From positions 1,054,001 to 1,118,000 of the forward strand of contig JBLDXI010000032.1 of NCBI GenBank assembly GCA_047495785.1: a DNA stretch of 64,000 nt, read 5' to 3'. The stretch is from Lepidodermella squamata. Its lineage: Eukaryota > Animalia > Gastrotricha. The notes under the pieces were generated by a model. The model ran no database searches and was not told the origin of the DNA. It saw only the letters and a list, made by a program, of their open reading frames with translations. The position numbers and the translations under genes are program-made. This document shows positions 37,656 through 59,213 of the stretch, in pieces. Numbering within the stretch: position 1 is the stretch's first letter; each line of letters begins with the position of its first letter.

Positions 37656-39113
37656 ATGACGAGGAATAAGCCTCACGCCGTTGCTGGAAATGAGGAGGAA
37701 ATGAAAAAGCAGCCTCACTCTTTCGTTTTCTCGAAGGGCAAAGTTGGTCGGTATGTTCGCCAACTCGTCCGTGATATGAGGACTATAATGGAGCCTTTTA
37801 CCGCTACAAAATTGAAGGTAAAAAATTGACTTCAATCGGAATTTTTATGAATTTTTTAAATCTTTTTCAAGGCGAAAAGGCAAAATGTGTTGAAAGATTT
37901 CGTGCAAGTCGCTGGCGTTTTGCACGTGTCGCACCTGTTGGTATTCACGAAGAGCGACGAACACCTTAATTTGCGAATAATTCGCCTGCCCCACGGCCCG
38001 ACCCTAACATTCCGAGTTGAAAGTTACACGCTGGCCCGTGACGTGATATCCTCCTTAAAACGCTACCACACCGAACATTCAAACCTGCTACACGCCCCGC
38101 TGCTCATTCTCAACAATTTCGTGAATGCAGCAGCGGCTGAAAATGCGGCGAAAAACACCGCCGGCCCGACTATGGAGAATCACATGAAGCTAACCGGGTC
38201 GATTTTCCAGTCGATGTTCCCGTCAATCAACGTTAACACGCTGAAATTGTCGCAGATGAAACGCTGTTTCCTGGTGAATTACGACAGCGAGGCTGAGACA
38301 TTTGACCTGCGCCAATATGCTGTTCGAGCGGTGCCAGTCGGAATTTCCCGCCCGTTGAAAAAACTTCTGGTCTCGTCGAATAAAGTGCCAGATTTGAGCG
38401 CCTACAAAGACGCGAGTGAGTTTCTGCTGAAATCAGGCCAGTTATCTGAATCTGAGGCCGAATTGGACGGTCCGGCGAATGAGGTGCAGTTGACGCAGGA
38501 CATTGGCGGGCGGGGTAATATGAAGAACAACACATCGGCTATTCGGTTGTTTGAAATGGGCCCGCGGTTGACGTTGCGTTTGCTCAAAATTGAGGAGGGT
38601 ATCTCGAACGGCGAGGTGTTGTTTCATTCTTATGTGCAGAAATCGCCCGAGGAGATTGATAAGTTGCGTAAGGCGATTCATAGCCGTAAATCGGTCAAGG
38701 CGGCTCGTCGCCACCAGCAGGAGTTGAATGTTACGCGTAAGAAGAACGCGCAACAGGAGAAGGATGACAAGAAGGCGGAGGCGAAGCGGCGGCGGATGGA
38801 GCGTGCGGCTGAGCGCATTGCTAGGTCGCATGGAAAGGCCGAGGATGAGGTCGGCAGCGAGCCGGAGGATGATACCGAGTACTACCGGCAGGAGTTGGGC
38901 GTCGAGCCGGAGCCGGAACTTTTCGGCCGTGGGAATAAAAAAATGCCGCCGGCTGGTGGTGATAATAACAAGCGTCGGGTTAAATTCGACATTCCGGCTA
39001 AAAAATTGGAGGGAAAGGAGAAGGGTGACAAGGTGCCGAAGGTGCCCGGTGGCGGGGTGACGAAGAAACCGGCTGGTCAGTTCTTCCGGAAAGCTGCTAA
39101 GCATTCGAAATAG
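37656..39113 (+). CDS. PPAN: Peter Pan / SSF1 homolog (Brix-domain ribosome biogenesis factor); exons 37656-37817 and 37872-39113
   Basis: PHSFVF..G.VG....QLVRDMR.IMEPFTA..LK, NVLKDFVQVAGVLHVSHL, LPHGPTLTFRV..YTL.RDV, FQSMFPSINV, SESEAELDG, SAIRLFEMGPRLTLRLLKIEEGI..GEVLFH; 54-nt GT-AG intron. Confidence 0.95.
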
Positions 39114-39475
39114 AAAAAAACAACCTGCAATTGTTTTGCTTTGAAATATTCGGCTCAATCTGAATGGCGAAATATGCTGTTTATTTGCAATAAAATCACG
39201 AAAAAGGTCGATTACGATGCGTTATTTCTTTTTCGTTTTCGAGCTTGAAGATTAAACTTGAAAAAACGGAGAATATGAAACTTTAAGGAGTTGCCCAATA
39301 TTGCACCTCGCCACATTTTCCGACCGTCCCAACCTGATATGTGAATAGCGTTGTAAAGTGAGGCTCGATAAGAAGACCTAATAGATAACGCTATTCCGGC
39401 GCAGGAATTTACGGCGGCATAAATGGAAAACGGAGCAAATTTTTATCAAGTTGTGGTGGGCAGTCATTCCAAAAC

Positions 39476-39856
39476 CAGAGCTGGAAGCAGATAGCTATTT
39501 TCCAACCCAACTTGACCCATAACCAGGCCGGGATTTTCTCGCGAAACCCAACTCAAACCGGTTGGTAATAACCGGTAATACCTCTTATACCTTATTTCTT
39601 TGACAAATTGTAGGTAACTTGGAAAATATCATTGGGAATCATCATTTTTCTTCAAAGCTACACTTCTTACTCCTGTTGCAGCTCCCAGAGCCATCGTCAA
39701 TGCAACAACGCATTTTTCTATTATCCACGCAACTTTTTCGCTTATGGTATGATTTCCCGGTCGTTTTTTGCTCTAACCGGCCTTGACCCAAACCTGACCC
39801 ATATCGGTAACCAGTTTCTCTACCTGCCGGTTTAGCACAACCTGTTTCCACCTCTG
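39476..39856. mobile_element. Non-autonomous TIR element (hAT-like termini)
   Basis: CAGAGCTGGAAGCAG at the left end is an imperfect inverted repeat of CTGTTTCCACCTCTG at the right end. The interior is rich in ACCCA/ACCGG. The same right terminus recurs near 57390-57405. No clean TSD. Confidence 0.5.
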
Positions 39857-40151
39857 TCCCAACGGCTGGCGAGCCTTATTTTGCTTGTCTTGAGCCTATC
39901 GATTGTCCTGCGCGTGACCGGCTGGGACAAGGTTGGGATTTTCGAATATTTACCACGAATTCCATATTTTTAAGTAGCGCTCGTTGTTTATGCTTGTTGC
40001 CGCACAAAGCAAATTCAGTCGAATTGCAACGCTGTCCGATTCATTTTCCTCTTGGTTTGATCAACAAAACCTTCACGCTATCGCTAAGTTCGTTCGCTCA
40101 GACCGCGTGTCACCCGCATTATGTTTTACTAGCCATTCATGCGAGAATATA

Positions 40152-40868
40152 CACAAGAAAAAAAATGGTCCGAATTCGGGGGATGCATAATTGATCTTTA
40201 CAAGCAATTCTATCATCCGAATTCATACCCCTGGGGCCTGCTAATTCGGGGGGTTAACTATGTAAGGTCCGAATTTAGGGGTTCAAAATTAATTATTCTC
40301 ATAGGCATAAATTCGGACCTTGGCAATTAATTAATGCAATTTTTGAAAAAAATCTGTCAATATTCAGCGAATATTTTATAGTTTTAAAATGATATTTATT
40401 TTTCAAAATTCAAGTATACCTGGTTTTACCAGGCAACAAGGTAACTGATGGCTCCGATACCCTATGAGGTAACCGGGGACATGGGTCAGAGATTCTCCAC
40501 CCAGGACTACCCGGCAACAAGTGAAACTACCAACCACAACACTATTACCAAGTTCCTTGCATGAATCTAAGTGATTGTCGATTGTGAATCTATGCCAATT
40601 TTTCAGCGAGTGGACCTTCGTTCATGAATACGATTCTGACTCGGTGCCTAATTAGCATATGCACACATGAAATATTACAAAAATTATGGAATTTTTGATT
40701 CAATTATTCATCCCCTAATATCATACCGCCTAATTCGGGGGATGCTTAATTAGTATGGTATGAATTCATAGCTCTGAAAAAACAGCACTTTGCAACCCCC
40801 TGATTTTAGGGCCTACCCCTGAATTCAGATGGAGCACCCCCTGATTTCGGACCATATTTTTTCTTGTG
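40152..40868. mobile_element. MITE with CAC...GTG termini and TA flanks
   Basis: TA|CACAAGAAAAAAAATGGTCCGAATTCGGGGG ... CCCCCTGATTTCGGACCATATTTTTTCTTGTG|TA; internal AATTCGGGGG subrepeats. Confidence 0.85.
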
Positions 40869-40969
40869 TACCTTAGAAATAAAACCTATCATTAAATATT
40901 ATAATTTCGGGTTTTCCGAAGAAAAATCATTATTACAACGGCAAAGCATTACAGGAAAGTCCCTATTTC

Positions 40970-42996
40970 ATGGCTCAGTTTAACCCGGATCTGGCTGCCC
41001 TTCCGGCTCCGCTGTACAACATCCATGGCAATATAGCTACGAATTGGCAAGGAATCGAACCTATGGATATGAATGCTGACGAAGCGGTAAGTGATAGCCT
41101 GATTGCCCTGACTTGCCAGTCATTGTTTCAAATTATTTATGGGCCTCATTCTACAAAAGACAACATTTTGATAGAGATTTAGGACTAGTAAAAATCGAAA
41201 GTTTTGCAGGGTGGCTCATCGTGGTTTTGTTGGATAGGCCATCTTAAATATCGCCGTTTTCAGCTAAATCACAGGCGTAGTCCGCCTAGTAAGGTCATTT
41301 GTCATTATTAGTTTTAGGTCATATAGTTTATATAGCAGCTCAGTCATAAAGGTTGGACAGAGCGCATTTCGAAAATTGAATTTGAAAACTATAAATAGAT
41401 AATATATATAACTCAGAGGCTTTAGTAGGCTCACCACCACAGCGTAGCAGAAATCAACCAAAGTGCAACAAAAAATTTAATACTTTGCAGCACACATTTT
41501 TGCAACACGCGACCTTGCTTTTTAGGCATCAGTGAAACAAGTAAATTCAGGCAGATGTTATCGGGGTCGCGGAATCCGACCGTGGTATTCGTTTAAATTT
41601 CAGGAACGTCGATACCGGGTAAACCGGGTAAAAACGGGTAAAACCGGGGTAAAATATGAAAATCGTCCCTTTCGGTTTTCATATTCGGACTGAGCGTGAA
41701 AAACTACCCCTATCCTATATCTTCTTGGTATATCGCACTTACAAGTTACAGAAATAATTCATGTGTTGCAATTTTATCCTGCTGCAAATTGGTTGTTTTG
41801 TGTTGCGCTTTGTGTGTGCTGTTGCGTTTTGTGAATGCTTTAGTAGGCATTCACATGAACGGGGTCAGTCACGTCGTCTTCGTCGTCTTCAATTTTAGAA
41901 TCAACTTCGGCAAGCAAATGATATCATCCCTAACGATGATCTGAACCTTTGGCGTGGCGACTTTCGTGGCATTGGATTATGCCGCTTGAGTTTTGACATC
42001 ACGCATGGCATTCCGGAGTATCGGCATTGGCAATATGTGATCGCTATGCCGGCAGTTGTGTGCCTTCATTCCACGCGACAAGTTTATGACGTGAGCAAAT
42101 GAAAAGCTTGTTCGTTCAATTATGCAATCATATTCATTCATTTAAAGCTTCCAGTAAATTTGGCTAGGCACTTCAGGGAAGGATTGAACGGGCAAGAATT
42201 AGACACTTACACCAATCACGTTTTCGGGGTTTTCATGGAGACACCGACCGTCGACATACTGATCGGGGTGGTTTTCGCTCAGTTCTATGACCAGCAATCC
42301 ATTGTGAGCAATCGAAAACGCGTGAATTTCCAGTACCTGTACTGTGCCAAGGCTGCTGATCTGCCGCAAGAGCTCACGCAATACGCAAAGTCGGTTTTTG
42401 TTCGTTCGATCCTCAACTTTCTTGATCTTCTTCGCCGCTGTAATTACGAAACTGCGCATTTTACAGCCACGAACGAAACGGACGCTCCGTGGTGCCGTGG
42501 AATTATTGACCAGGCTGTCGACCAGGGGATCGCTATCGATCGCGGAGACGTGGGTGGTCGAATTTACGATTTATGGAACTATTTGAAAAGGACATGCATT
42601 CGAAGAAAAATTGCGACGATTCCCATCTTCCACGGCGACACTCTGCAGCGTGCATTTGAAGGTGACATTGTTAGGCTCACAGAAGCGGGGCAATTCAACG
42701 AAAATAAGATGTGGCTCGCCGTGAACAGAACAACAAGGGCAGAACAATGCCGTAAATTTGTCGCTGAACTTGGGTCACGCAGCCGTGGTGTGGCTGATGC
42801 AGAGCTCGAGCCCTTGTGCAGGCATTTTGAAGCACCCCAAGTCAATCAGGATCAGGAAGCTATTTTTGACAGTTTGGACATTTTTGAAGCGACCTGCGCG
42901 ACTCGATCGTTGACTTTCAACACCGTAGCTCAGGCGAGGTCTTCGACAGATTTTATTATCAGCCAAGGATATTGGACGACTCCAGTAATACGATAG
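40970..42996 (+). CDS. Stand-alone CBP/p300 (KAT11) HAT-like protein, copy A, predicted catalytically dead; exons 40970-41086, 41899-42090, 42148-42996 (~385 aa)
   Basis: Colinear with the p300 HAT domain: YTNHVFGVFME/YRTKALFAFEE, QFYDQQ..SNRKRVNFQYL/QEYGSD..PNQRRVYISYL, NFLDLLRRCNYETAHF/GYLEYVKKLGYTTGHI, WCRGIIDQAV/WYKKMLDKAV, IPIFHGD/LPYFEGD, LTFNTVAQARSST/LEFSSLRRAQWST. Phase-0 GT-AG introns keep the frame. Confidence 0.8.
41431..41836. mobile_element. Small insertion with degenerate TIRs in intron 1 of HAT-like copy A
   Basis: Flanked by a direct repeat GCTTTAGTAGGC (41419-41430 and 41837-41848). AAAGTGCAACA...TGCAGCA...TTGCAACAC is mirrored at the right end. It is absent from the paralogous intron copies near 45420, 50300 and 55880. 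Confidence 0.6.
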
Positions 42997-43673
42997 AGAT
43001 GATAGAGCGCTCACTCGCAGCTAAGAGGGTGGAACGCTATGGGCACGAGATGGTAGGGGATTAATTCATTGTCCTGGGGGATCGATCGATTGCACTTATC
43101 GCTCGATTTCTCGCTTCGATTGCTGGGGCCGCAGCTGGGCGTCGGGTCATTTAAACTTTGAAAGACGACGGATTTTTTGGTACCAAATTTGGTCCAGAAA
43201 TCTGTTCAGAAATGGTTGAAAGGTGGCCGAGAAGTAAAATTGAGACAATCGCATTTCTCTTTCCAGGTAATTAACACCTGAAAACAAGGTGAAATTGAAG
43301 GATGTTTTGCAGCCATTTTGTTCGCCAGGTCGAGACGATCATTTTGACACCTGATTTAGATCTGCGGACGCCATATTTCGATCGCTACAAATCGAATCCG
43401 AAATTAAAATACCTTTAAAATTTTACTTCTCGGCTGCCTTTCAACCAGTTCTGAAAAGATTTCTGGACCAAATTTGGTACCAAAAAATTCGCCGTCTTTC
43501 AAAGTTTAAATTACCCGACGCCCAGCTTCGAAGCGAAAAATCGAGCGATAAGTGCAATCGATCGAATTGTAATTAGTTCAGTTTTTTCCGCCAGGACAAT
43601 GAGTTAATCCTACCATCTGGTGCCCATAGCGTTCCACCCTCTTAGCTGCGAGTGAGCACTCTATCATTACTAT
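42993..43673. mobile_element. Foldback element / MITE with ~250-bp inverted arms
   Basis: ATGATAGAGCGCTCACTCGCAGCTAAGAGGGTGGAACGCTATGGGCAC... is mirrored by ...GTGCCCATAGCGTTCCACCCTCTTAGCTGCGAGTGAGCACTCTATCAT. The arms continue inward through TTTGGTACCAAATTTGGTCCAGAAATC. Confidence 0.9.
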
Positions 43674-45196
43674 GAGTAACACTGCAAACGGTGACGTGTA
43701 ATAGAGTGAACAGCTCTAACTTCGGACAGTGCTCAAATTCGGACGTCCAAAATTGGAGCCATCGCGTTGCTCAGTTTGCGGCGATTAAAACACTATAATT
43801 AAACTCTTTACGCGCTTTATTTTGCGACGCAACAATGATTGATGAATCAAAACTGAAAAATAAAAATACGTATTTTCATTTTCGTGATGTTAGGTAATTC
43901 AAGCTATTGCTTTCAACTTGAAAATTCAACTGAAATCAAGTTGGTAATGATGCAAAATGATACAAATTTGATTACTAAATTCGGTAAACCCAGATTTCCG
44001 GCCGCTTTTGCCTTGTTCTTGGCGGACACCAGAGGTCCGCATGTCTATCACTTGCATTTCACGTGGGACTCATTCCAAGGCAATAATTTGGGGTTTTCAA
44101 AGATGTTAGCCGTTTTACAGAAAAATTGGCTGCATCAGTTAAATTGACTTCAAGAAGTATTAAAATCTAAAAATTCCTGTCAGACCTAACCTATTCTATA
44201 GTTCATAGTTCAGGTTTCATCATTTCACAATTCTGTGAAGCTTTTTAAGTCAGTTTGCATCTTTTGGGCTTTGAGGCGTCTTTTTAACAACTTTCAAAGC
44301 GGGAAAATGATAACTTAATTTTAATCTCATTTGAAGCAGAAAATAACCAAATTTTTTTAACAGCTAGCGAAAATCGTTTGAGGACCACTGACTAAAGTTA
44401 CCATAGTGTGCACAAGACCGAAGTCACTTACACATCTGGACCATTTCTGGACGACCATTCCTTTCGACGAAATTCCCGCCGCTGGCTCAACCGACGGGGT
44501 CAGTGAAAGATAACGATTCGAGCAGGAAATCAGAAAGGAGCACCGAAGTCCGTCGCCCCACTTTGAAATCTGCAGCACACGCGCGCAGCACAATTCTTAA
44601 TCCCGCGCTCAATTTTAAGGTGTGCAGCCCAAATGTGTACTTTTCTCTATTCCTCCAAAGCGCTTATGGCACAGCGTTTCGCCGCGACATCTCAGTGGCA
44701 GGGTTCGATTCCAGAGTGCAAATTTTTCAAAAATGCGATTGCGAGAAGTAACTTTTTACAAGTATTGTCGCTGGGGCAGTGTTCGAAGCACAAGCACAAG
44801 CGGATGGGCAGTGTTCGATGAGCCAGGCGAACAATATTTTTCTATCACGTATTTTTTTAATTTCGACCGGCGGCGGCCGGCTGGTTTTCTATTGCTAGGC
44901 CCCGCCAGCGCAAAACAGGGTCAACGGTCAGTTCTAGAAAATGAATGTTTTTTATGCCAATTTAATCATCTATCGATTGAATATAGGGTTCTCGCTCGAA
45001 AAATTGAAAGGGAAAAAGTTTCACGCGCACTGAAAAATAAGGGCGGGTGACCTCACGCGAGCGCACCACCAAGTAAAATTATGCACGTAAAATTTTTGAT
45101 TCTCAAATTTCAATTGTAAGAAATTTATATTCAATCGATAGAGAATTTAATTGACGTCATTTTGAACTTCTGACATCTTTTGACTGGGATCGTTTA

Positions 45197-45520
45197 ATGG
45201 CTCATTTAAATGCCGATCTAACTTGGCTTAACGACAACGATCTGTTTCAAATGGATGCCGAAGTCGCAGTGAGTGATAGCCACAGTGATAGTCTGATATA
45301 TGGCTTGCAATAATACCAGTAGATACGCCTTGAATCCAACTTTTACATTAAATTCTCGTTAAATTTGGAATGAGCCAATTTCGAAAAATTATTTTGAAAT
45401 TTTTGGTGAGACTACATAAATCAGAGGCTTTAGGATAGTAGGATAGGTATTCACATAACCGCGATGTCGCATCGTTGTATGAACAACGAATCTTGATAGC
45501 GACTTTTCTTCAATTTGTTG
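45197..45520 (+). repeat. Orphan copy of HAT-like exon 1 plus start of intron 1 (MAHLNADLTWLNDNDLFQMDAEVA|GTGAGT), lacking the upstream leader
   Basis: Near-identical to 50071-50380 and similar to 55661-55980. Confidence 0.8.
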
Positions 45521-45740
45521 CTTTTAGTCCCAAGACACATGCGCGCCGTAAGTGCGCGCGTGCACAACTTTATCAATTTTAACCCCAGAAATGTGCGAAT
45601 TTCGCATCTGTTTTGTCAGATTTAAAGAATATCATTTCATCTGAAAAAATCGTCATCTATCGATATAAAATGTGCATGGTAGGTAAGGAAAATACGCAGA
45701 TTATGGCTAAATACGAAATACGAAAATACGAACGGGGACA

Positions 45741-48330
45741 GTGGTTGGACTCAGCGATCACTATGGGACAACCTTGGTAATCGAAGACGAAGGAAGCGAG
45801 AAATCTAATGTCAAGGATGTGCGCGTGTTTCGTGATCTTCGAAATATTGACTCAGACCGATTGAATAGCTGCCTAAAAGCAAAACTGGGAAAAATCGACG
45901 ACGACTTATCCGTTGAATGCGAGGCGTACTGGCTGAAACTGAAAACCGCAATTTTGGCCACAATTAACGAAGTCGTCCCGATGATTGTCAAAAAACCTGG
46001 TCGAGCAAACAAGCGAGTGCAGCCAATTATCGATCCTAATCTCTCGCGTCGCCAGCGGCAAAGACTACGGCGCAAGATTCGACGTGCCAAATACTACAAG
46101 CGAGTCAAAGAAGCTGGTCGAGATCCTCGGAAAATATGGCGAGTTATTGGCGAATTCCGACCGAAACCTAAATCTCGTGGTTCGTTTCAAGAACTGGACA
46201 AGGAGAAGTCGTTGATGAAAGCAAATGAATTCAACGTCTTCTTTGCGCACGCCGGTGAGAAGGTCGCCAAGGCGCTCTCAACTAGCCTCAACTATGTCAG
46301 ACGTCGCACAGGATATCAATGCTTCGACTTCAGATTTGTGTCTTTGATCGAAGTTGAGACGGCAATCGACAAGCTTTCTTACAAATCGACTACTGGTTAC
46401 GATGGCGTTCCGGAATGCATCGTGAAAATGGCTAAGTCAACCCTTTCGCCTCACTTTATGAGACTTTTCAACATGGGAATCTCTGAAAACGTTTTTCTTA
46501 GGGATTGGAAAGCATCAATCGTGACCCCTCTTCACAAGTCAGGAAATAGAACAGATGTCGCCAACTATCGCCCGATCTCTATCACATCGCCGGTTGCTCG
46601 AACGTTCGAACGATGCTTAGCTTTTCAACTAAAAGCTCATCTCTCTAAGTTTTGGTCGCCATCGCAGCATGGCTTCCGAGAAAAGCACTCAACTGACACT
46701 TGCGTAGTTCACTGAGGATTGGCGGCAATCTATGTGTAATGGCAAGGTTGTTGCTGCTGTTTCTATCGACTTATCGAAGGCTTTCGATACACTCAACCAC
46801 GCGGGCATTATCGAATCTTTTCGTAGCGCCGGCCTATCACCGTCGGCATTGCAACTGATAGAAAACTACCTTCAAGGTCGCCAACAAGCAACTAAGGTCA
46901 ACAACGAATTGTCTTCATTCGAATCGGTGAATCTCGGCGTTCCACAGGGATCCGTACTTGGACCCCTAATGTTTACGGTTTACGTCAACGAATTGTCAGC
47001 AGTTGTTACTCGCTGCAGAATAAAGCAATACGCCGACGATATCACAATTTACTTTTCAAGCAGAAATGTCAATGAATTACGATCAGTTCTACAGCAAGAG
47101 ATGAATCGTGTTTGCTCATGGCTCAGCAGCAACTCTTTGGCAGTTAATGGGAAAAAGTCGCAGTTTTTGCTTTTGAAATGTGCTATGCCATCCGCGCCGG
47201 ATTTTTCCATCACTATCGGCGACACAGTTATCGGACCATCAAACGTTATGATCACTCTGGGCTTCACCATTGACTGCAAACTTTCCTTCAAAAAACATAT
47301 CAAAGGTGCAAAGAGCAAGGCTCGACGGGGATTGTATGCCCTCAAACTAGCTGCGAAATTCGTCGACCGAAAAACTGCCATCATGATGGCCAATGGCTTG
47401 ATATTCAGCCATATCAATTACGGTGACCTAACCTTAGGTCAGGCAGCACCGACTACTCTAGCAAAGCTTCAGTCAACGGAAGATCGTGCCGTCCGAATCA
47501 TATGCGGCGCTCACTCACTCGCAGATGCGGAGCCTCTTCGCCATCGACTCGGCTGGGTCAACGTTCAACAGAAACACGCCATCCATTTGGCGACATTCAT
47601 CCACAATTGCCTGAATAAACAAGCACCGGCTGCGATTCAAACACTTTTCAAGCTGAACCCGGTCGGCAGCTACTCAACACGTAACACTGAGCCAATGTTC
47701 AAGCCGACGTATTTGTCAGTTCGTGGTACGTTGAGCCTTAGCTATCGCGGTCCCGATCTCTGGAATCAACTGCCTGCAGAAGCTCAAAATGCTGAGTCAG
47801 CTGAAGCGTGCCGCTCAAATGTTTATGCTTATTTTTACGAAAGAAATTCCACTGGTTTATGCCTATGATAAATTCGATACACTATATATTTTTATAATGC
47901 TGCGATGCTGCTTTGTTGTGATGTTATTATGATTTTGTTATTTTACTTAATTCTCATCATTGTTCAATCGCTCACTCTTGCTATATCGTTAGCGACGTTG
48001 AATAACTCGGAATTAAGCTTGTTTACCTCCGTTTCTTGGTGAGAGGTGACAAGTGAAAAGTCTGTTATTTTTGCCTCTTCATTTACGCAAAAAGCCGCTT
48101 TTTACTTGTCAACCGTAACTTTGAAACGGATGTAAACAACCCCAAATCCGAGTTATTCAACGACGCTACCGATATGCACTTAATAACATTTTTTATGTCA
48201 TCATTTGCCAATGTCCTATACCTCTGTAACCTGTCCTGCAATTATCTGTTTCATTTTCAATTCACTATTGTCAAGCTGCTCTCTCTTGGGCGTCATAGCT
48301 TTGAAATAAATAAATAAATAAATAAATAAA
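45741..48330 (+). mobile_element. 5'-truncated non-LTR retrotransposon (CR1/L2 group) ORF2 with one frameshift and a (TAAA)n tail
   Basis: End of the endonuclease domain (GLSDH); RT motifs WKASIVTPLHKSG, NYRPISIT, QHGFR, DLSKAFD, GVPQGSVLGP, QYADD; frameshift near 46710-46732; (TAAA)n at 48305-48330. Confidence 0.93.
47983..48175. mobile_element. MITE nested in the LINE 3' UTR
   Basis: ATATCGTTAGCGACGTTGAATAACTCGGA is mirrored by TCCGAGTTATTCAACGACGCTACCGATAT, with further internal palindromy. Confidence 0.8.
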
Positions 48331-48462
48331 TTACTTTAGGAAATATTAACCAGGCACGCTCACTCGCCCAAGTCAATACTGATGCGCACTGTTATCTATC
48401 GCTAATTTTACCGCGCGCGCAGTTGTCATAGAGTAACTTGAACTTTTTGTGTCGGTTTTTAT

Positions 48463-49380
48463 CAGGGTTGCACTATTCACAGATCGCGGTCAATTTATAC
48501 ATGTTTATACGTATAAACTGTTTAAACGTGTAAAAATATATGTTTAAACACTGCATATAAATAATAAGACTAAGGCTCAGATTTCGACGCCTAGCCAAGC
48601 ACCATATTTTTGTTTTCTTACAACAGGACTCACTGCTATCGTAAAACAGATATCACCATTGAATTCCTCGTCAAAAGTTACCCCAGAACGAGTCAAGATA
48701 ACGATTAGCAGCATGTTTCTTAGCTGCCACAGTTAGGTACCTATGATGCAAACCCGCGAGGCAAACGGAATCTAAAGGCGTGATTGCGAAACAATTTTAC
48801 GGTTAGCTGAGCTCTTGCCAACAAAGAAAGTTAACAAAGAAAATGGAAAGGGCCCCGCCGGATCGAATGGCTTTCGCAGAATTCATACCCATCGTCGTTT
48901 CCGAGATAGGATCACTTCCGGTCCAGATTACTTTATTGCAGTAATAAATAATTGATAATTGCCCTAAAGTCTTTTTGCTAGTCGTTTTCTATGACTTATC
49001 TAGGGTAACTTTTGACCAGGAATTCAATGGCGATATCTGTTTTACTATTGCAGTAACCTTAGATTCAGAAAAAGATGCTGATGAAGCTCAAGCACGTTGG
49101 GAACCCTTGTTCATCCTGCGTATATCCCATTACCCAAAAGTCATCTAATACACAATCTGAATACATGTATTATATAGTATAAATCTCGATATGTGATAAG
49201 TTTACAAAATGACGAAATTCCCTCAACTTTCACCTTAGTTTCCTTGTTTTAGTGGTCAAAACCTGCTACGTTTCTGCACCCGTATTTATACATTTTCACA
49301 TGGCACCAAAACTTTATACTGTTTAATCATGTGTTTAAACACGTGTGTTTTTACAGACTGTTTATACAAGTGCAACTCTG
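48463..49380. mobile_element. Non-autonomous hAT-type element with 8-bp TSD and an internal foldback (48632-49054)
   Basis: GTTTTTAT|CAGGGTTGCACT ... AGTGCAACTCTG|GTTTTTAT; internal arms ACTGCTATCGTAAAACAGATATCACCATTGAATTCCT / AGGAATTCAATGGCGATATCTGTTTTACTATTGCAGT. Confidence 0.88.
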
Positions 49381-49969
49381 GTTTTTATGCCAATTTAATC
49401 ATCTATCGATTGAATATAGGAAGCAAACGCTCTCTGACATGAAGTTTGGCATCCAAAATCGTCGTGATAGTCATGGCGCACTGCCAAAAGCCGGAAATAA
49501 TCTTTAAGCTACCAGCTAGAGTTGTCAGCGAATAGATGACGGCGAGAACCCCTTCAAGTTGGCAAGTTACCCGTCAACTGGGGTGACTTTGACGGTGGGG
49601 TCCCTTTGCCCTGCGAAAATGGGGTGACTTTAGCATAGCAATTCTTCAGGAGAAGCAAAAAAAGAAATCTGAGTTGGAATCTGAGGTGGGGCAAATTAGG
49701 ATGCAGACTCTCAAAGTTTTCAAAGCCCTGTTTTTTGAGGAAAATTTTACGATACAGCTTTGAAATTTATATGGTTGAATAGAGCGTGAGCTACTGCCTT
49801 TTATGACTACAGCCGATGAAAACTCTTTTTGCAACGCCAGGATATAGTGAGGGTCAAAACTGGGAAATTGCCTTGAAAATGTGCTTAAGGAATTTTTTGC
49901 GGAAAATTCTAATAATTTCGGCAGTATTGAAATGGCTTGAGTGTCCAGTCTCTTATTATTTGTCTATGA

Positions 49970-50500
49970 TTACATATAACCTCTCACTTTGCAGTAAGTT
50001 ATTTTATTTCTTATTTGTGGAAGGAAAATTATTACAACGGCAAAGCATCAGAGGCGAAAGTCTGTTTATGATGGCTCATTTAAATGCCGATCTAACGTGG
50101 CTTAACGACAACGATCTGTTTCAAATGGATGCCAAAGTCGCAGTGAGTGATATAGCCATTGTGATAGTCTGATATCTGACTTGCAATAATACCAGTAGAT
50201 ACGCCTTAAATCCAACTTTTACATTAAATTCTCGTTAAATTTGGAATGAGCCAATTTCGAAAAATTATTTTGAAATTTTCGGTGAGACTACATAAATCAG
50301 AGGCTTTAGGATAGTAGGATAGGTATTCACATAACCGCGATGTCAACGAATCTTGATAGCGACTTTCTTCAATTTGTTGTTAGTTTGATGTTATTATCAG
50401 AACAAATTTACCGAGTGTCTGATCTATAACTTTGTTTTCTCCTGCTAAACTTTTCCTGTCCCAAATCTCAAACTGTCCTAATATTATGTGTTGCTTTTTT
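49970..50500 (+). repeat. Orphan copy of HAT-like leader, exon 1 (50071-50142) and start of intron 1
   Basis: ATTACATATAACCTCTC...ATTACAACGGCAAAGCATCA...ATGATGGCTCATTTA...GTCGCA|GTGAGT matches 55560-56070. Confidence 0.8.
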
Positions 50501-50910
50501 GGGGTCGCTTGTTGGGGTGTCTTCAGTCGGACAGCTCGGTAGCGAATATTAGCGCAGTTAAATGTTATCCGGAATTAATCGAAATTTCAAAAAATTTTAT
50601 TGGTTTAATTTTTATCTCAGTTTTTCCCGCACGGCTATTTATAAATAACGATGAGTCGTACCGAAAGAGAATTCGATCGTTAGATAGCCCGTAAAATTTA
50701 GCACTAGGAAAGGCAGTTAATTCTGCCAGGATGCTTACTTATTATTGTCGCTAAAAATTGACAAGTACTGCGAAATTGAAAAAATTTCAAGTTTTAAGGT
50801 GGATCGAAACAAGTTTTATCGCGCCTATTATAACCAAAAAACTGCGAGGGCTACGACAATGAGCTTAGTCTCGTTCGTTTCGTCTTGAAGCAGCAGTCTT
50901 GAAGTTTGAA

Positions 50911-50988
50911 GCAGCGGCTGAAAATGCGGTGAAAAATCCCGCCGACCCGACTATGGAGAATCACACATGAAGCTAACCGGGTCGATTT
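50911..50988 (+). pseudogene. Displaced PPAN coding fragment
   Basis: Matches 38130-38205 (GCAGCGGCTGAAAATGCGG...CCCGACTATGGAGAATCAC...ATGAAGCTAACCGGGTCGATTT) with a few substitutions and a 2-nt insertion. Confidence 0.85.
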
Positions 50989-51402
50989 ACCGTTGTTTGT
51001 GGCGAAAAGGGCACTTGGGGCGATTTGGCCGAAAATTGAAGTCATCACATTACTTTTAATAGCTCATAGATCTCTGAAAAAATTGGTGCAGATAATCTTC
51101 AACAGACTCCCTACACCTGTAAAAAATGTTCAGCCATTGATGTCCCAAAATGAGGTCACGGCAACCCAGTATTTACAGGTAAGTTTAGGCGAGTAAAAAC
51201 GACCCATATGAATTGAATTATCTGTAACCAATCGAAAGGCTTTGAGTTCAGATGACATTTTTTCCCTCCACCATTTCCTTTGGTGATAACAAGGAAAAAA
51301 ACCGCGACTCGAGGCTCGAGGCGATGCACAGGTATGGCCAGGTAATTGCGCCCAAAGTGCCCCATGGTAAAATCAAATAATGGGGCGAATTGGTCTTTTG
51401 AC

Positions 51403-51436
51403 AAGGCCGAGGATGAGGCCGGCAGCGAGCCGGAGG
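51403..51436 (+). pseudogene. Second displaced PPAN coding fragment
   Basis: AAGGCCGAGGATGAGGCCGGCAGCGAGCCGGAGG matches 38835-38868 with one mismatch. Confidence 0.8.
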
Positions 51437-52767
51437 CTAATGTCGGCCTACGGTGCAAATTTGATGAAATTAATATTGCTGGAAAGCCCGGGATGTGCTG
51501 CGTCCAAATATATGGTCTGTAGTTAGGTCAGAGCTACTTGGACAGGTGAACAAATTCATCAAAAGTGACCAAAAACGCAAAAATGCCATAAAAATGGCAT
51601 TTTCTGACACTTTGAGCGATTATTAGGGGCACAGCAGACTCGAGTTCCTAAAATATTTTTAGATCAAAATGAGCGTCTCAACGAGAAGAATCTTATTATG
51701 CAAGAAAAAATTAGGAAGTCAGGTCTGCTGGGGGTCAAATAGAGAAAAAACCGATTTGCGAAAATCGCATGCTTTTCATTGAAATTTGAGGTTTTAAGAT
51801 AGTTTTTATTGCACGACGTTTCGAAATCAATACAGATTTCATCATCAGGTGAATTGAGTTTGAAAGTAAACAGAGTTTTTTCAGAAAAGATAAGTGACCA
51901 TTTTAAGATGGAAATTTTCAAATATACAATTTTTTTCCGCACCATTAAAATAATAAAAATAAAAAAACCGGTGATGAGTGGTGACTCATCATGGGTGAAT
52001 CTTCATGCATTTGATTGGGATAAAAAAATGGGCGACGTTAAACTAGTTCATGATTTACTGCAGCTGAGTTAGTAATTTTTTCTCACTGGATTCAATTAAA
52101 ATCTTTTAACATACAATATAATCTATCAAATATATAATGAAAGCAATTATTTTTCTTAAGGTCGGGCGCGAAAATTAGATGGAAACAAGCAGCGTTGCCG
52201 GCGCCGGGCAAACGGCGGTTCCTAATTTTGCCGAAGGCTGCCAGTCTGGGTATGTTGCGAGTCGATGTGGCAATCGGTTTTACCAGACGCAGAATCACGA
52301 GCAGAATCCGAATCTGGGGCTAGATTTTTACTGGCCAACGTTTCAAGAGATTGGCGAGCCCGAAACCTCGGAATTTCAGGAGCGGAAATGGACAGACAAA
52401 CTCGCGAGCTAATACGAGTGAATCGAATGGATCGATGATAAATGCGACAGCGAGACCTTCTACGCCGGAATACTGAGACAAAATACATAGTGACTCGAAT
52501 TAACATTTTTCTCTATGGGTTATTCTGATACCTGGTTTGATTTGATTTGGAGCACTTGTTGACCGATGAAATCGTCTCCGTGAAGCTTTGGTTGTGCATT
52601 ACCTCACATGGTATCCAAATAAAAATTAAGAAATAAACATTTTGTGTTTTACTCGAAGAAAACAATTGAACACGACACTTGTTTGTGACTTTTGTGACTG
52701 ATGGACAAATAAATTTGAAATTTGAATTTGAAATTTGACACTCATTTTTCAACCTTTTCGCGGCATA

Positions 52768-53742
52768 GAGGTGCGGAATAGAGGTGCGGAAAAAGTGCCG
52801 AATGGATGCGGAACAGGTGCGGAACAGGTGCGGAACGAGTGCGGAATGAGTGCGGAACAAGTGCCGAGAAGGTGCGGAATAGTGCCGGATGAAGGGCGGA
52901 ATGAGGTGCCGAATTACCGTATTTGCCTGAAAATAAGCCCGGCTTATATTCGAGTACTATTTCAAAATTTGAGCGTTTTCAGCAAAATAAATTTAGAAGC
53001 CCGGGCTTCTAATATGGCCCCGGGCCTATAGCTAAATACTTTTCGTTTTTGGCAGAAAATATTCGGAAAATGAACTTGATTCAATATTCAAACATCTTCA
53101 TTCGTCATTTAAAAGGACCGCAGCCCATCGCTAGCAGGATAAAATCACATTGGAAAATATCAAATGATATCAGGCGGCATGTTTAACGGTTTGTAAAACG
53201 GTAACACAAACTTACATTCGTCGTCGAACCTACATTTTCTTGACGGCTTCCTTGCTAAATTTCGCGTCGTTTGATGTGAACATTTTGTAGGTTCGAGGAT
53301 GTCTTGACACTAAATTTTAGCCGCAAAGTTGCCAGATTTGTGTCGAAAATAGCGTTTTGCGCTTAGGCACACTTTTCAGGCACAATTTTTACACCTGCTC
53401 CAAAATGACCAGCCACATCTCTGACCACTAATTCTGAAACTTCAGACAGCTATCTTTCATTGAAAATTAGTTTCGCTCATTTTCAATCATAGGCCGATTT
53501 TGCCCCTTACCGGCCCTCGTCCGAGTTCCAGTTGAGGTTTTCAGTTGAATTAATTGAAAATACGTTCAAAATGATAATATTTACTGCATTAATGTCAATA
53601 TATCGCCTCAGCTTTTGATTTCGATTTTGGTACCGAAATTAAGGCCCATCCCGTTATAGAAGTCCGTGGGCTTGTGTTTGAGACCGGGCTTTTTTTCAGG
53701 CAAATACGGTAGTGCCGAATTTGGTGCCGAATGAAGTGCGGA
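52768..53742. repeat. ~11-bp minisatellite (GTGCGGAAnnn), 52768-52914 and 53712-53742, split by a transposon
   Basis: Tandem GTGCGGAA/GTGCCGAA units lie on both sides of the 52917-53709 insertion. Confidence 0.85.
52917..53709. mobile_element. Non-autonomous Tc1/mariner-superfamily element (Tc2/pogo-like CCGTA termini), TA TSD
   Basis: TA|CCGTATTTGCCTGAAAATAAGCCCGG ... CCGGGCTTTTTTTCAGGCAAATACGG|TA. Confidence 0.88.
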
Positions 53743-54399
53743 AGAATTGGAAAAGTCGAAATCAGCAACGACCAGGAAGTTCGTCATTGAAATCAAGGTA
53801 CGAGCTCGTTGTGTGAATTCTCGGTGTTAGATAAGGTGCTAGTAGAACCAGCATAACCGGCATCGCGCCAGTCACATAAAAAATCAACGCCTTGAATAGA
53901 CACTTGAGTGACCTCGATAACGCCGACTCGTTCGCAGCCATATTTGACTCCATCGATTGAAGGGGAAAATGGTTTCTCCGAAAATTTGCCGTAAACCCCA
54001 ACTGCACTACAACCATACCGTGAAACATCTGAAGATCCTAAGATAAGTTTCACGCAGTTCTTCTGAAGACGAGGATTCTCGAAATCGCGCTTTCTTCGGC
54101 ATCGGGAACAGTGCCAGTCAAAAAGACCGACATAACCAGCATCGCGCCAGTCACATTGGAGTTCGATGTTTCGGAGAGACACGAACGAGAAATCGTTTCC
54201 AGTAGGCCCACGTTGGAACTCATCCTCGAAACCATTTGCCAGGTCGATCGTAGCGTGATTACCATAGATGATGTTTGAACAAGAAGAGGCTACTAAACCA
54301 AGATACTTGCTAAACGAATAGTTGACGCAGCATTCACCCATCGACCCCATTCACCCAGGTTGCTGGCCAAAGCGGCAACCAGTAATCCAGCGATTGGGT

Positions 54400-55246
54400 G
54401 AATGCTGGCGAAATGCCTAGCGAAAGCTGCCAGCTGTTTTGGTGCTCTTAACAAGCTGATGTGTAACAGAAAACATATAAGCCTAGCCACAAAATTGAAA
54501 GTTTTAAAATGTCTGGTAATTCCTCTACCCTCACCTACGCCTGTGAAACCTGGAACCTAACTACTAAGCAGGAACAAAGGTTAAATGTCACTTTCGTGCG
54601 CTGGCTCAGAACCATTATGGGATTTTTTAGAACAGATTATATACCTAACATCGATATTAGATTGATCTGTGACGTTTTGGAATGTAACTTTGGAATTAAG
54701 TAAAATGATTGAAAAGCATCGTTTGAAATATTTTGGGCACATTATTCGCCAAGACGAGTATGACACTGAAAGTCTCACGAATGCCATATATCATTGGAAA
54801 GTGGTCGACCCGAGTTGGTACTTGCCTCGCGGTAAACCGCCAACCCGCTGGACCGATAGCTTGAAAAGGAGTCTTCTTAAAATTGGTTTGTTCGATATTC
54901 ATGTGAAATATATTAAAAACCCAAATGAGCCAGTTAGACGCGGGAGACCTCGTAAGTCGACCCTGTTAATGCGGCGCACTGAAATTCACAAAATTGCGGA
55001 TCTAGAATTAGCGGAAATAACTGCCAGAGATCGGGATGAATGGCAATTAGTGTGCAATAGCATCGAAAATTATGAATTTTTGGGCTAAAGCAGGTTGTTC
55101 GCGACCGATCTGTCGGCCCCTGAAGCCGATCGCCTGTCGTCAGCCGTCCCCTAAACCCTCTCGGGTAAGGCCTTTTTTCTACTCTCTAATATTAACATCA
55201 CATGCCTACGGAGGACGAAAAATAAAACTGATTCATTCATTCATTC
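54400..55246 (+). mobile_element. Degenerate 3' fragment of an RTE-clade LINE with (ATTC)n tail
   Basis: AKAASCFGALNKLM...ISLATKLKV, LTYACETWNLT, RWLRTIMG, HRLKYFGHIIR and RGKPPTRWTD across two frameshifts; (ATTC)4 at 55231-55246. Confidence 0.85.
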
Positions 55247-55660
55247 CTCTCCATCTAATTAATCAGCAAAAAATAACCGACCAGCACCGCATAGCAAGCG
55301 AAGAAAAAACACGGCTGGGATTCATCATTGAATTCACTATGCAAAACACCACCCACAATGCTCTATCCTATATCGGTTGTATTGCATGCCAGCGGACGGG
55401 TCCAGGCTCCAGGCTTGGAATACCATGTTTTCTACGAATTCCATCAATTTTTTTCTCGCTCTACGTAATCAAAAATGCACACGATCGCTGAGGCCTTTCG
55501 CTCAGACCGCGTGTCACTTTTGGGTGGTACTTATACTTGCCATTTATGCCATTTATTCATTACATATAACCTCTCTCACTTTGCAGTAAATTATTTATTT
55601 CTGATTCGTGGAAGAAAAATTATTGCAACGGCAAAGCATCACAGGAGAAATTCTGTTATG

Positions 55661-58600
55661 ATGGCTCATTTAGATGACGATCTAACTTGGCTGAACGACA
55701 ACGATCTGTTTCCAATGGATGCCGACGTCGCAGTGAGTGATAGCCATAGTGATAGTCAGATATCTGGCTTAATAAGTAATACTGGTAGATTCGCCTTGAA
55801 TCCAATTTTCACATTAAATTCTCGTTAAATTTGGAATGAGCCAATTTCGAAAAGTTAATTTGGCGAGGCTACATAAATCAGAGGCTTTAGTATTGATATT
55901 CACATAACCAATGTCGCAGTCACATCGTTGTATAAACAACGAATCTTAATGGTGACTTTTTGTTCAATTTGTTGTTAGTTTAATATTATCAGCAGAACAT
56001 AATTTCCCCTACTACGCTTTTCCTGTCCTAAATAGGAAACTGTCCTGCTGAATTATTTGTTGCTTTCCCTAACTTTGTCAAGCTGCCCTCTCTTAAGGCT
56101 CGTATAAACGGGCAAACATTTTGTCAAACATTGACTTCAAACATGAATGTTTGATGAAAATGTTTGAAGAGCATTTACACGATCAAACTTGTTTGTCAAA
56201 CATTGGAAAAGGTGAAAGGTCACTTCTTGAGGCTTCAAACATTTGTTTGTCAAACTTTCATTTACACGCTCAAACAATGTTTGCAAGAAAACTAGCAAAA
56301 TCTATGCAAATCATCGAGAAAATGGCATAATTTATGCAAATTAATGAGCTAATTTGTTTAATTTATGCAAATTGGGAGAATAATTACCAATACGGGTAGA
56401 AGGGTCACATTTTATTCAACATCGAATTTACTTTTTTCAACATCAAATTACTTTTTCTATCATCAAACACTTTTTTCAACAGCTAATTTTGATATGTTAT
56501 TTTTTGCGATCCACACTCATTAAAGCCCTTGATAATGACCAGTCCGGAAAAATAACAGAAAATTTGGGCGAACAATGTAGTTTACTGCTGTCGAACCCGT
56601 TTATAAAAATATGGAAAATTGAGTTAGCTGCAATTTTGCAAAGTTACGGACAAATATTTGATTTTTTCCCAAAAAAAATTGATTTTGTAAAAATTTGTCC
56701 GAATAATTTCACGATACTCATTTTTGCGAAGACAATGATTCAAATGAGTGAAATTAGCCAGGGCCCTTCAAGGTTAAGCCGCGGGAACGTTTTACACCGT
56801 TGCGCTGCACTGAAAAGCCGCATGCGCTCCCTGTCTTGAGGGCGGGTATTATCAATGTCGATGGAGATTTTCAACTCGTACCCTGGGGATGTGTCTATTC
56901 TATTGTAATACTTCTCTATTCGCTTCTCAACTGGTGTCGTTAGTTGGGAAGTGGTCTTGTGACGCTGCTTCGCCCCGGATATGCCATCAGCACCCATGTC
57001 TCGCCGTCGAGAAACAACTTTGCCCGGCACTGACATCGTTCGTAGCCGGACTTTCGCATGTAGCGACAATAACAATTTAGGTGATGTCATCACCGTTTGC
57101 AAGGTCTCTTTATAATTGAAAGTGTCTTTCAACCACTATGAATCACCAAAAATCCAATAATCGATTAGCGCAGACCCCTGATTGTTGATAATAGCGTCCT
57201 TTCATCTCTTACGCGTGCTACTCATAACTATTCGCGGGAGTCTAACAGCCGCGTTAAATTCGCTATATGTTTTTCTTTCATGCCGAAAAGCCCAGTTTAC
57301 CGGTCAACCGGCTGGAAACTAGTCGACCCATACCCAACTCGTGACCCGACTCAACCGGTCAGCTTACAGCTTACCGGCCGGTTAACCCGACCTGTTTCCA
57401 CCTCTAGATATGATCACCTTAGCTCATTGGCACGAGCCTGGGCCCCGCTATCATCACCTGAGGTCGTAACCACATGAAATCCACAACTTCATCATGAAAG
57501 CATACTCTTCCCTATCAAATAATAATTTCTGAAGTTTGCTGTTGAAAAAAGAGTTTGATGATAGAAAAAGTAATTTGATGTTGAAAAAAATATTTTCCGG
57601 GTAGAATGCTTTCACATTTTCGACCGCTTTGATTTTATTTTTTTCCTTGCCACATGACCCGAGCGATTTAAGAATCAAATTAATCAGATTCTATCCATTT
57701 TATGAAGAAGCGCATGAAAAGTTGCGCAGATGTCGTCCCGGCTTGCAACTCCGCAGCCGCCACAGCGCCAAATGTTTGCATGTTTGTCAAACAAAATCGC
57801 CTCGACGAGTGTTTTTGTTTGAAGGCGTTTTCAACACGCCTCTCAAACATTTTCTTTCAAACACGTGCATTTAGACGGGCAAACATGTTTGAAAGCCGTG
57901 TTGGTCCCAACAATGTTTGAAGCAAAAGTTTGAACGTGTAAATGCAATGTTTGATCAAACAATGTTTGAAGCCGTTGTTTGGCAAACATGTTTGCCCGTT
58001 TATACGAGCCTTTAGGCGTATGAGCTTTCACATAAATAAATACATTTCAGAATAAACTTCGGCGAGAAAATGATATAATCGCAAACGATGATGTGGACCT
58101 TTGTCCTATGGACCCTCGTGATCCTTCGAAGCTTACAGGAGGTTATTGGAGCTGCATTTAAGAGCCGCAACTTATATGTATTATGTTGAACAGATTCTGA
58201 ATGCGACTTGACTTTGATCAAGTATGGTATTCCGGAGTATCGGTGTCGGCAAGAGGTGATCGCTAAGCCGGGAGTTGTGTGCCTTAATTCCGCGCAACAA
58301 TGTTATAACGTGAGTAAATAACAACCTTGTTCATTCAATCATGTGATCAAATTCATTCATTTATTAAAAGCTTCCAGTAAATTTGGCAAGGCACTTCAGG
58401 GGTGTATTGTGCGACCAAACAGTCGATACTTACACCAATCACGTTCTTGCGGTTACTATGGAGACGTTGACCGCTGACTTGCTCGTGGGCATGATCTTCG
58501 CTCAGTTGTATGGCCAGAATTCCATTGTTAGCAATCGAAAACGCGTGAATTTCCAGTACTTGAACTGTGCCCAGGCTGTTTATCTGCCTCAAGAGCTCAG

Positions 58601-59213
58601 AGGATACGCTGAGTCGGTCTTTGATCGGTCGATCCTCAACTTTTTGGGTCTTCTTCGCCGCTGTAATTACGAAACTGCGCATTTCACAGCCAACAGCGTA
58701 GCGGACGCTTCGCGGTGCCGTGGAATTATTGACCAGGCTGTCGACCGGAGGATCGCTATCGATTGCAGGGTCTTGGGTGGCAACACTCGAATTTACGATT
58801 TATGGAGCTATTTGGAATCGAAAAGCTCTCAAGGGCACATTGCAGAAATTCCCATCTTCCGCGGCGACACTATGCAGCGTGCATTTGAAGATGAAATTGT
58901 TAGGCAGTCGGAAGCGGGGGAATTCGACGAAACGACGTTGTGGCACTCCGTGAACGAAACGGCCAAGGCACAGCTAAACCGTAATTTTGTTGCTGTACTT
59001 GGGGGAGGCAGCCCCAATGCAGAGCTCATGCCTATATGCAGGCATTTTGGAGCGTCCCAATTCAATCAAAACCAAGGATCTATTTTTGACAGTTTGGAAA
59101 TTTTCGCATCGTTTTGCGCGACTCGATCGCTGACTTTCAACACCGTAGCTGAGGCGAGGTCTTCGACCGATTTTATAATCAACCAAGGATATTGGAAAAA
59201 TTCTGTTCTGTGA
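55661..59213 (+). CDS. CBP/p300 HAT-like protein, copy B; proposed exons 55661-55732, 58051-58141, 58194-58309, 58371-59213
   Basis: The last exon aligns end to end with copy A. The leader, exon 1 and exon 2 (NKLRRENDIIANDD...GIPEYR...VVCL) are homologous. The frame needs a 52-nt intron at 58142-58193; otherwise this is a pseudogene. Confidence 0.68.
56096..58011. mobile_element. PIF/Harbinger-type non-autonomous element with TTA TSD, in intron 1 of HAT-like copy B
   Basis: TTA|AGGCTCGTATAAACGGGCAAACAT ... ATGTTTGCCCGTTTATACGAGCCT|TTA; many subterminal TGTTTG/CAAACA repeats. Confidence 0.9.

Follow-up and report, generated by a model that had tools for sequence, protein, structure and literature searches.

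Few chromatin enzymes are as conserved or as much studied as the p300/CBP proteins, whose histone acetyltransferase (HAT) domain is normally present in a single copy per genome, as part of a large multi-domain coactivator. Fungal Rtt109, a stand-alone protein of ~400 amino acids (aa), has a KAT11-type fold without the CBP accessory domains and actively catalyzes acetylation, binding acetyl-CoA. The closest precedent for partial CBP paralogues comes from C. elegans, where cbp-2 and cbp-3 represent short CBP/p300-derived paralogues without HAT activity that were once called pseudogenes, yet are expressed and have RNA interference phenotypes (PMC10320766). The closest analogue in function is the pseudo-HAT domain of O-GlcNAcase (OGA). 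It has an acetyltransferase fold that no longer binds acetyl-CoA, persists as a module without catalysis, and was lately described as a histone-binding domain (PMC12747287). Our search of the literature for KAT11-derived pseudoenzymes found no description of one. Here, we analyzed 64,000 nucleotides (nt) of the gastrotrich Lepidodermella squamata (the window; contig JBLDXI010000032.1, positions 1,054,001 to 1,118,000), which carry on the plus strand two genes, copies A and B, whose last exons encode a degenerate KAT11-like core. A lineage-restricted gene family is the best explanation of A and B. We consider it probable that this family is fast-evolving, non-catalytic and KAT11-derived, that it lies in a tandem array which gains and loses copies, and that at least one of the local copies is functional.

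The initial annotation of this locus, made from the letters of the DNA alone, had described stand-alone genes with no bromo, TAZ, KIX or ZZ domain. Pfam indeed detects none of these in any exon or in the 386-aa protein P0001 (the sole relative, described below), nor a RING/PHD around the core, and the copy A gene model encodes just 385 aa. This stand-alone build of ~385 aa sets A and B apart from p300/CBP. It is shared, together with the predicted KAT11-type fold, by Rtt109, which differs from them in being an active enzyme. While cbp-2 and cbp-3 keep TAZ1 (and, in cbp-2, KIX) and wholly lack the HAT domain, A and B keep only a remnant of the HAT core (PMC10320766). The OGA pseudo-HAT has a GNAT fold and lies at the C-terminus of a large conserved enzyme, whereas A and B are KAT11-derived, stand-alone, fast-evolving and multi-copy.

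Direct searches did not reveal a KAT11 domain. With E-values up to 10, Pfam returned no family for either exon 3, for exon 2 of copy A or for P0001, and the HAT_KAT11 gathering score was not reached. A phmmer search of PDB sequences with copy B reached only E ~1, its sole matches being p300 chains, while PDB sequence searches with copy A, with P0001 and with the profiles came back empty. The KAT11-like domain of the initial annotation, invisible at this level, is borne out by profile-profile comparison and by structural search. As a reference, we used a back-translated RRVYISYLDSV pattern to find KAT11 sequences on metagenome contigs, and cut from long open reading frames (ORFs) 24 non-redundant segments, which were aligned; all 24 match Pfam HAT_KAT11 (PF08214). 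Using hhalign, a profile of P0001, A and B aligned to these 24 KAT11 domains with a probability of 96.1% and an E-value of 3.2e-9 over 214 columns, and a profile of A and B only did so with 88.5% and 2.7e-6; none of the controls, comprising 40 column shuffles and the reversed profile, was better than E 0.016. The matching core comprises exon-3 residues 21-179 (42208-42684 in copy A). Except for the deleted L1 loop, it is collinear with p300 from ~1355 to 1515, through the RRVYISYLDS strands, helix alpha3, the HIWAC strand, the WYKKML helix and LPYFEGD. Foldseek searches of the PDB with the predicted structures of P0001 and copy A point to the same family, as the first 44 and the first 30 matches, respectively, are all p300/CBP HAT domains. 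By VIA-align, the predicted structures reach Z 7-7.9 over ~150 residues against p300/CBP, a score equalled by HAT1 and GNAT enzymes, which suggests an acetyltransferase-like core whose family cannot be named from this comparison alone. Judged by its sequence profile, the exon-3 core (residues 21-179) is homologous to KAT11.

This homology does not extend over the whole protein. The manual alignment to p300 in the initial annotation is supported by hhalign for the central core but not for the C-terminal part, as the match over the last 100 residues is collinear without being significant (E 0.32). The N-terminal third of the HAT domain is not recognizable in A or B, and exon 2 has no detectable similarity to KAT11 or to P0001. 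Look-alikes from the ESM Atlas were uninformative, consisting of PUF and nematode hypothetical proteins, with template modelling scores <0.3 to GNATs on a poor model.

We interrogated the catalytic and cofactor positions of the core using p300 numbering, anchored by the PDB alignment of copy B and by the gap-free reference segment L009. All of the residue changes named by the initial annotation are present in this alignment: D1399 is Y in A and N in B, W1466 is W in A and R in B, and in both copies W1436 is T and Y1467 is C. Besides these, S1400 is C and R1410 is A in both copies, and T1411 is K in A and E in B. Most of the L1 loop is missing, as had been claimed, with 21 alignment columns deleted. 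The absence of the autoinhibitory loop, also claimed, is less firm; the segment following the FEGD motif lacks the length for such a loop, but this region is unaligned, so that the loop only appears to be absent. Of the 27 acetyl-CoA pocket residues of p300 listed in PMC6770547, four are identical in A and three in B, and seven are deleted. The structural motifs N-R-R, Y1397 and L1398, Y-TAH with H1434, AVD and IP-F-GD-E are retained. With L1 deleted, the R1410/T1411 pair gone and D1399, W1436 and Y1467 replaced, the proteins would be able neither to bind acetyl-CoA nor to pass on acetyl groups in the manner of p300. A and B have different residues at D1399 and W1466, as would be the case were catalysis no longer of importance. 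As read from the alignment, the p300-type catalytic and cofactor apparatus is lost, in agreement with the initial annotation, and the losses are common to P0001.

P0001 was the one relative found in an exhaustive search of 1.84 billion representative proteins (E 4e-18). Word-index protein searches returned nothing, or P0001 itself only, and a scan of metagenome loci with the family profile found no further member. P0001 is an intronless ORF of another animal that recurs unchanged on four metagenome contigs (L001, positions 409-1569, and L002-L004), which come from four ENA assemblies. It lies on a gene-dense animal contig, next to genes for a BTB/Ion_trans potassium channel and for a Cys-loop receptor. 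It shares 25-27% of its residues with A and B and has nearly the length of the copy A model (386 versus 385 aa). P0001 carries the same L1 deletion and also lacks D1399, W1436 and Y1467, indicating that the dead state predates the split of lineages that now share just 25-27% of residues. Because the family lies below the reach of Pfam and has a single relative among the 1.84 billion representatives, ordinary annotation would call these genes orphans.

Exons were searched individually, and gene models were built by DNA alignment of A and B. The exon-3 ORFs lie at 42160-42996 (A) and 58383-59213 (B), and their proteins are 65% identical. At the DNA level, 80.6% of bases are shared between 41998-42976 and 58217-59196, and the likeness extends ~160 nt 5' of the ORFs. 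Exon 1 of copy A (40970-41086) starts with an ATG, encodes a 39-codon acidic, hydrophobic head and ends at a GTAAGT donor. It is followed by a putative intron 1 (41087-41898), whose TTTTAG acceptor is kept in B and which contains a high-copy repeat at ~41340-41870. Exon 2 (41899-42090) has 64 codons with both ends in phase 0. Intron 2 (42091-42147; 57 nt, GTGAGC...AAAG) is homologous to the copy B intron whose junction is seen spliced in a contig of sequencing run X1 (see below), and exon 3 (42148-42996) consists of 282 codons and a stop. The three exons of copy A join in phase 0 to give 385 codons. In copy B, exon 1 (55658-55732) has 25 codons (MMAHLDDDLTWLNDNDLFPMDADVA) and a GTGAGT donor. 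Compared with that of A, exon 2 (58051-58309) is longer by 67 bases and contains a stop as well as a frameshift, and its frame is restored by removal of a putative 52-nt GT-AG intron at 58142-58193. Intron 2 (58310-58370; 61 nt, GTGAGT...AAAG) is removed in the X1 contig, and exon 3 (58371-59213), with 280 codons and a stop, carries the KAT11-like core. The boundaries of exon 2 are kept in both copies, with a TTTYAG acceptor before it and a GTGAG donor after it. Two diverged spliced paralogs, as initially annotated, are thus supported by the ORFs at the annotated places, their 65% identity, the conserved GT-AG signals and the exon 2-exon 3 junction of B in X1. In another frame of exon 2, A (42006-42041) and B (58225-58260) each have an ATG-started 11-codon ORF, MAFRSIGIGNM and MVFRSIGVGKR, which may be due to chance or may be a small overlapping ORF.

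We looked for transcripts by mapping reads to one stretch, 37800-43100, which is the copy A region, so that any copy B signal there comes from B-derived contigs cross-mapped onto A. Run X1, apparently RNA, covers a Brix-domain gene and, with contigs of low depth, exon 3, and is empty over the intergenic interval 39216-40100. These contigs derive from copy B, since all seven of the seven listed variant letters are B bases, and a 112-nt X1 piece has 11 mismatches to A, which is the number of A/B differences there. The loose end of an X1 contig before 42148 equals the last 30 bases of B exon 2 (58280-58309) and runs on directly into exon 3. Copy B is therefore transcribed and spliced, provided that X1 is RNA. 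Of the RNA junctions, which the initial annotation had proposed as a check, the one between exons 2 and 3 of B would in this way be seen, but none was seen for copy A. In a second run, X2, exon 3 has the depth of single-copy sequence.

The first exon is common to four copies, all of which show in the DNA alignment an ATG, a stretch of 24-39 codons of acidic and hydrophobic character, and either GTAAGT or GTGAGT as the donor. Besides A and B, these are two orphan first exons on the plus strand, C (45197-45268) and D (50068-50142), which are 96% identical over 281 nt; each has an intact ATG, a GTGAGT donor and its own 5' flank, and neither is accompanied by exon 2 or 3. Copies C and D may be what is left of lost genes of the family, or they may serve as alternative first exons. 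Copy C lies immediately 5' of a fragment of a non-long-terminal-repeat retrotransposon (long interspersed nuclear element, LINE), whose reverse transcriptase spans 45741-47868, has a frameshift at ~46715-46732 and lacks the endonuclease part.

Other repeats adjoin the two complete copies. A high-copy element with 37-nt terminal inverted repeats (40150-40870) lies just 5' of copy A. This element and the repeat at ~41340-41870 have 10-25 times single-copy depth in X2 (10-15 times over the intron 1 repeat), and the second is also found in low-depth X1 contigs. We considered exon 1 as part of a repeat and ruled this out, as the high-copy element stops at ~40870 and exon 1 with its donor is kept in four copies. 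Three bases past the stop of copy A begins a 250-nt inverted repeat (42999-43241 and 43419-43667, 85% complementary) that is foldback-like or resembles a miniature inverted-repeat transposable element (MITE), and the similarity between A and B ends at it. A foldback element of ~1.9 kb (56095-58012, with arms at 56095-56489 and 57532-58012) occupies most of intron 1 of copy B.

The evidence for selection on A and B is mixed. Neither exon 3 contains a stop and, in neutral simulations, 158 random substitutions leave an exon of such length open in ~0.5% of cases (P ~0.005); the three insertions or deletions between the A and B exons 3 are all multiples of 3. The initial annotation had remarked that both ~280-codon last exons remain open despite many substitutions, and these figures bear it out. 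Differences between A and B fall on 16 of 80 KAT11-conserved columns and on 29 of 66 other aligned columns (Fisher p 0.002). Together with the splicing of B and the persistence of P0001, the open ORFs, the in-frame indels and the spared conserved columns stand against a near-neutral ratio of nonsynonymous to synonymous substitution rates (dN/dS).

Several observations weigh against a functional, non-catalytic family. Pairwise dN/dS between A and B is 0.62-0.77, the differences are spread flatly over the codon positions (58, 47 and 58), and neutral simulations conditioned on no stop give a dN/dS of 0.82 +/- 0.15, than which the observed value is not significantly lower (p ~0.06). The dN/dS comparison proposed in the initial annotation therefore gives a value below 1, yet one that, with stops excluded, cannot be told apart from neutrality. 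By a hand count on the A/B alignment, the conservation of intron 2 is similar to that of the exon. Exon 2 of B may be broken, unless the putative 52-nt intron is removed. No X1 contig over 37800-43100 derives from copy A itself, although the silence of copy A is not proven thereby, and X1 was taken as RNA by guess. The AlphaFold models of P0001 and copy A are poor, with predicted local distance difference test scores of 38 and 40, and offer a weak lead only. Finally, Rtt109 is a KAT11-fold enzyme that catalyzes with other residues.

Many of these observations would also be expected if one or both copies were young, decaying pseudogenes of an otherwise functional family, with frames that are open through luck and recent duplication, a possibility that we find doubtful but take seriously. 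The near-neutral dN/dS and the flat codon positions favour it, as do the stop and frameshift of B exon 2 relative to A and the absence of copy A from X1, and the two orphan first exons with the LINE, MITE and foldback insertions suggest an array in decay. Such decay is hard to square with the low probability of an exon free of stops, the three in-frame indels and substitutions that avoid the positions conserved in the fold. All splice signals are also kept in both copies, and B is transcribed and spliced in the apparent RNA run. The selected pseudoenzyme put forward in the initial annotation accordingly holds as regards homology to an enzyme fold with catalysis lost; selection is supported in part (by the open ORFs at P ~0.005, the spared columns at p 0.002 and P0001), but dN/dS is not significant and copy A is unseen.

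It is improbable, in our assessment, that A and B are still acyltransferases with a rebuilt cofactor site and other catalytic residues, differing from p300 as Rtt109 does. The equivalents of H1434, Y1397 and L1398 and the central sheet are kept, and the VIA-align comparison of the predicted structures suggests an acetyltransferase-like fold. A rebuilt site would have to work with L1 deleted, the R1410/T1411 pair lost and 23 of the 27 pocket residues changed or gone, and the positions of D1399 and W1466 differ between A and B and so appear unconstrained. Chance or convergence of an unrelated lineage-specific protein is a very improbable source of the KAT11 likeness, because the lack of significant matches in Pfam and PDB sequence searches, the unrelated look-alikes from the language-model-based ESM Atlas and the fold tie with HAT1 and GNAT enzymes are outweighed by an hhalign E-value of 3e-9 with clean controls, motifs collinear over 214 columns, p300 chains as the sole PDB phmmer matches of copy B and p300/CBP at the top of Foldseek for two independent models.

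The remainder of the window contains genes for Pellino, the Brix-domain protein and a TPR-repeat protein, together with a weak Storkhead-box match that is below the Pfam cut-off, and introns are short. A long tandem array of single-exon genes (4609-33017) encodes single-pass membrane proteins that have a signal peptide and a tail with a PY motif or a Cys string, for which Pfam gave no family save a weak ApeC_platyh match (E 0.058). An ORF at 54669-55088 resembles a LINE ORF2 tail by motif alone, with no Pfam support, and a 185-codon ORF on the minus strand (53793-54350) has an internal repeat with CDWRDAGY twice.

If A and B belong to a non-catalytic, KAT11-derived family, we infer that protein is made from these genes and that the proteins most likely bind partners rather than modify them. 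Each would be a protein of ~385 aa, in which a short acidic, hydrophobic N-terminal head precedes the degenerate p300/CBP-type KAT11 core. The core keeps the skeleton of the central sheet and helices (motifs NR-R, Y-TAH, AVD and IP-F-GD), and the protein would act as a binding module, a pseudo-acetyltransferase whose surviving fold docks a protein partner. The acidic head, which resembles an activation-domain-like peptide, may recruit coactivators or compete for them. The locus, with its two orphan first exons beside two complete copies and its many inserted transposons, would be one where copies are gained and lost. A more far-reaching possibility, which we regard as unlikely, is that the dead KAT11 core has become the partner-binding effector domain of a lineage-specific regulatory system, paralleling the KRAB and SCAN domains of vertebrates. 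The stand-alone, acidic-headed copies would then serve as modulators or decoys, and their fast evolution would stem from genetic conflict, for example with the transposons of the locus.

If the favoured reading of a fast-evolving, non-catalytic family is true, the few known pseudo-acetyltransferases would be joined by one of KAT11 origin. These genes would also provide a natural experiment on what the KAT11 fold does without catalysis, with substrate or partner docking, decoy action and dimerization all being possible.

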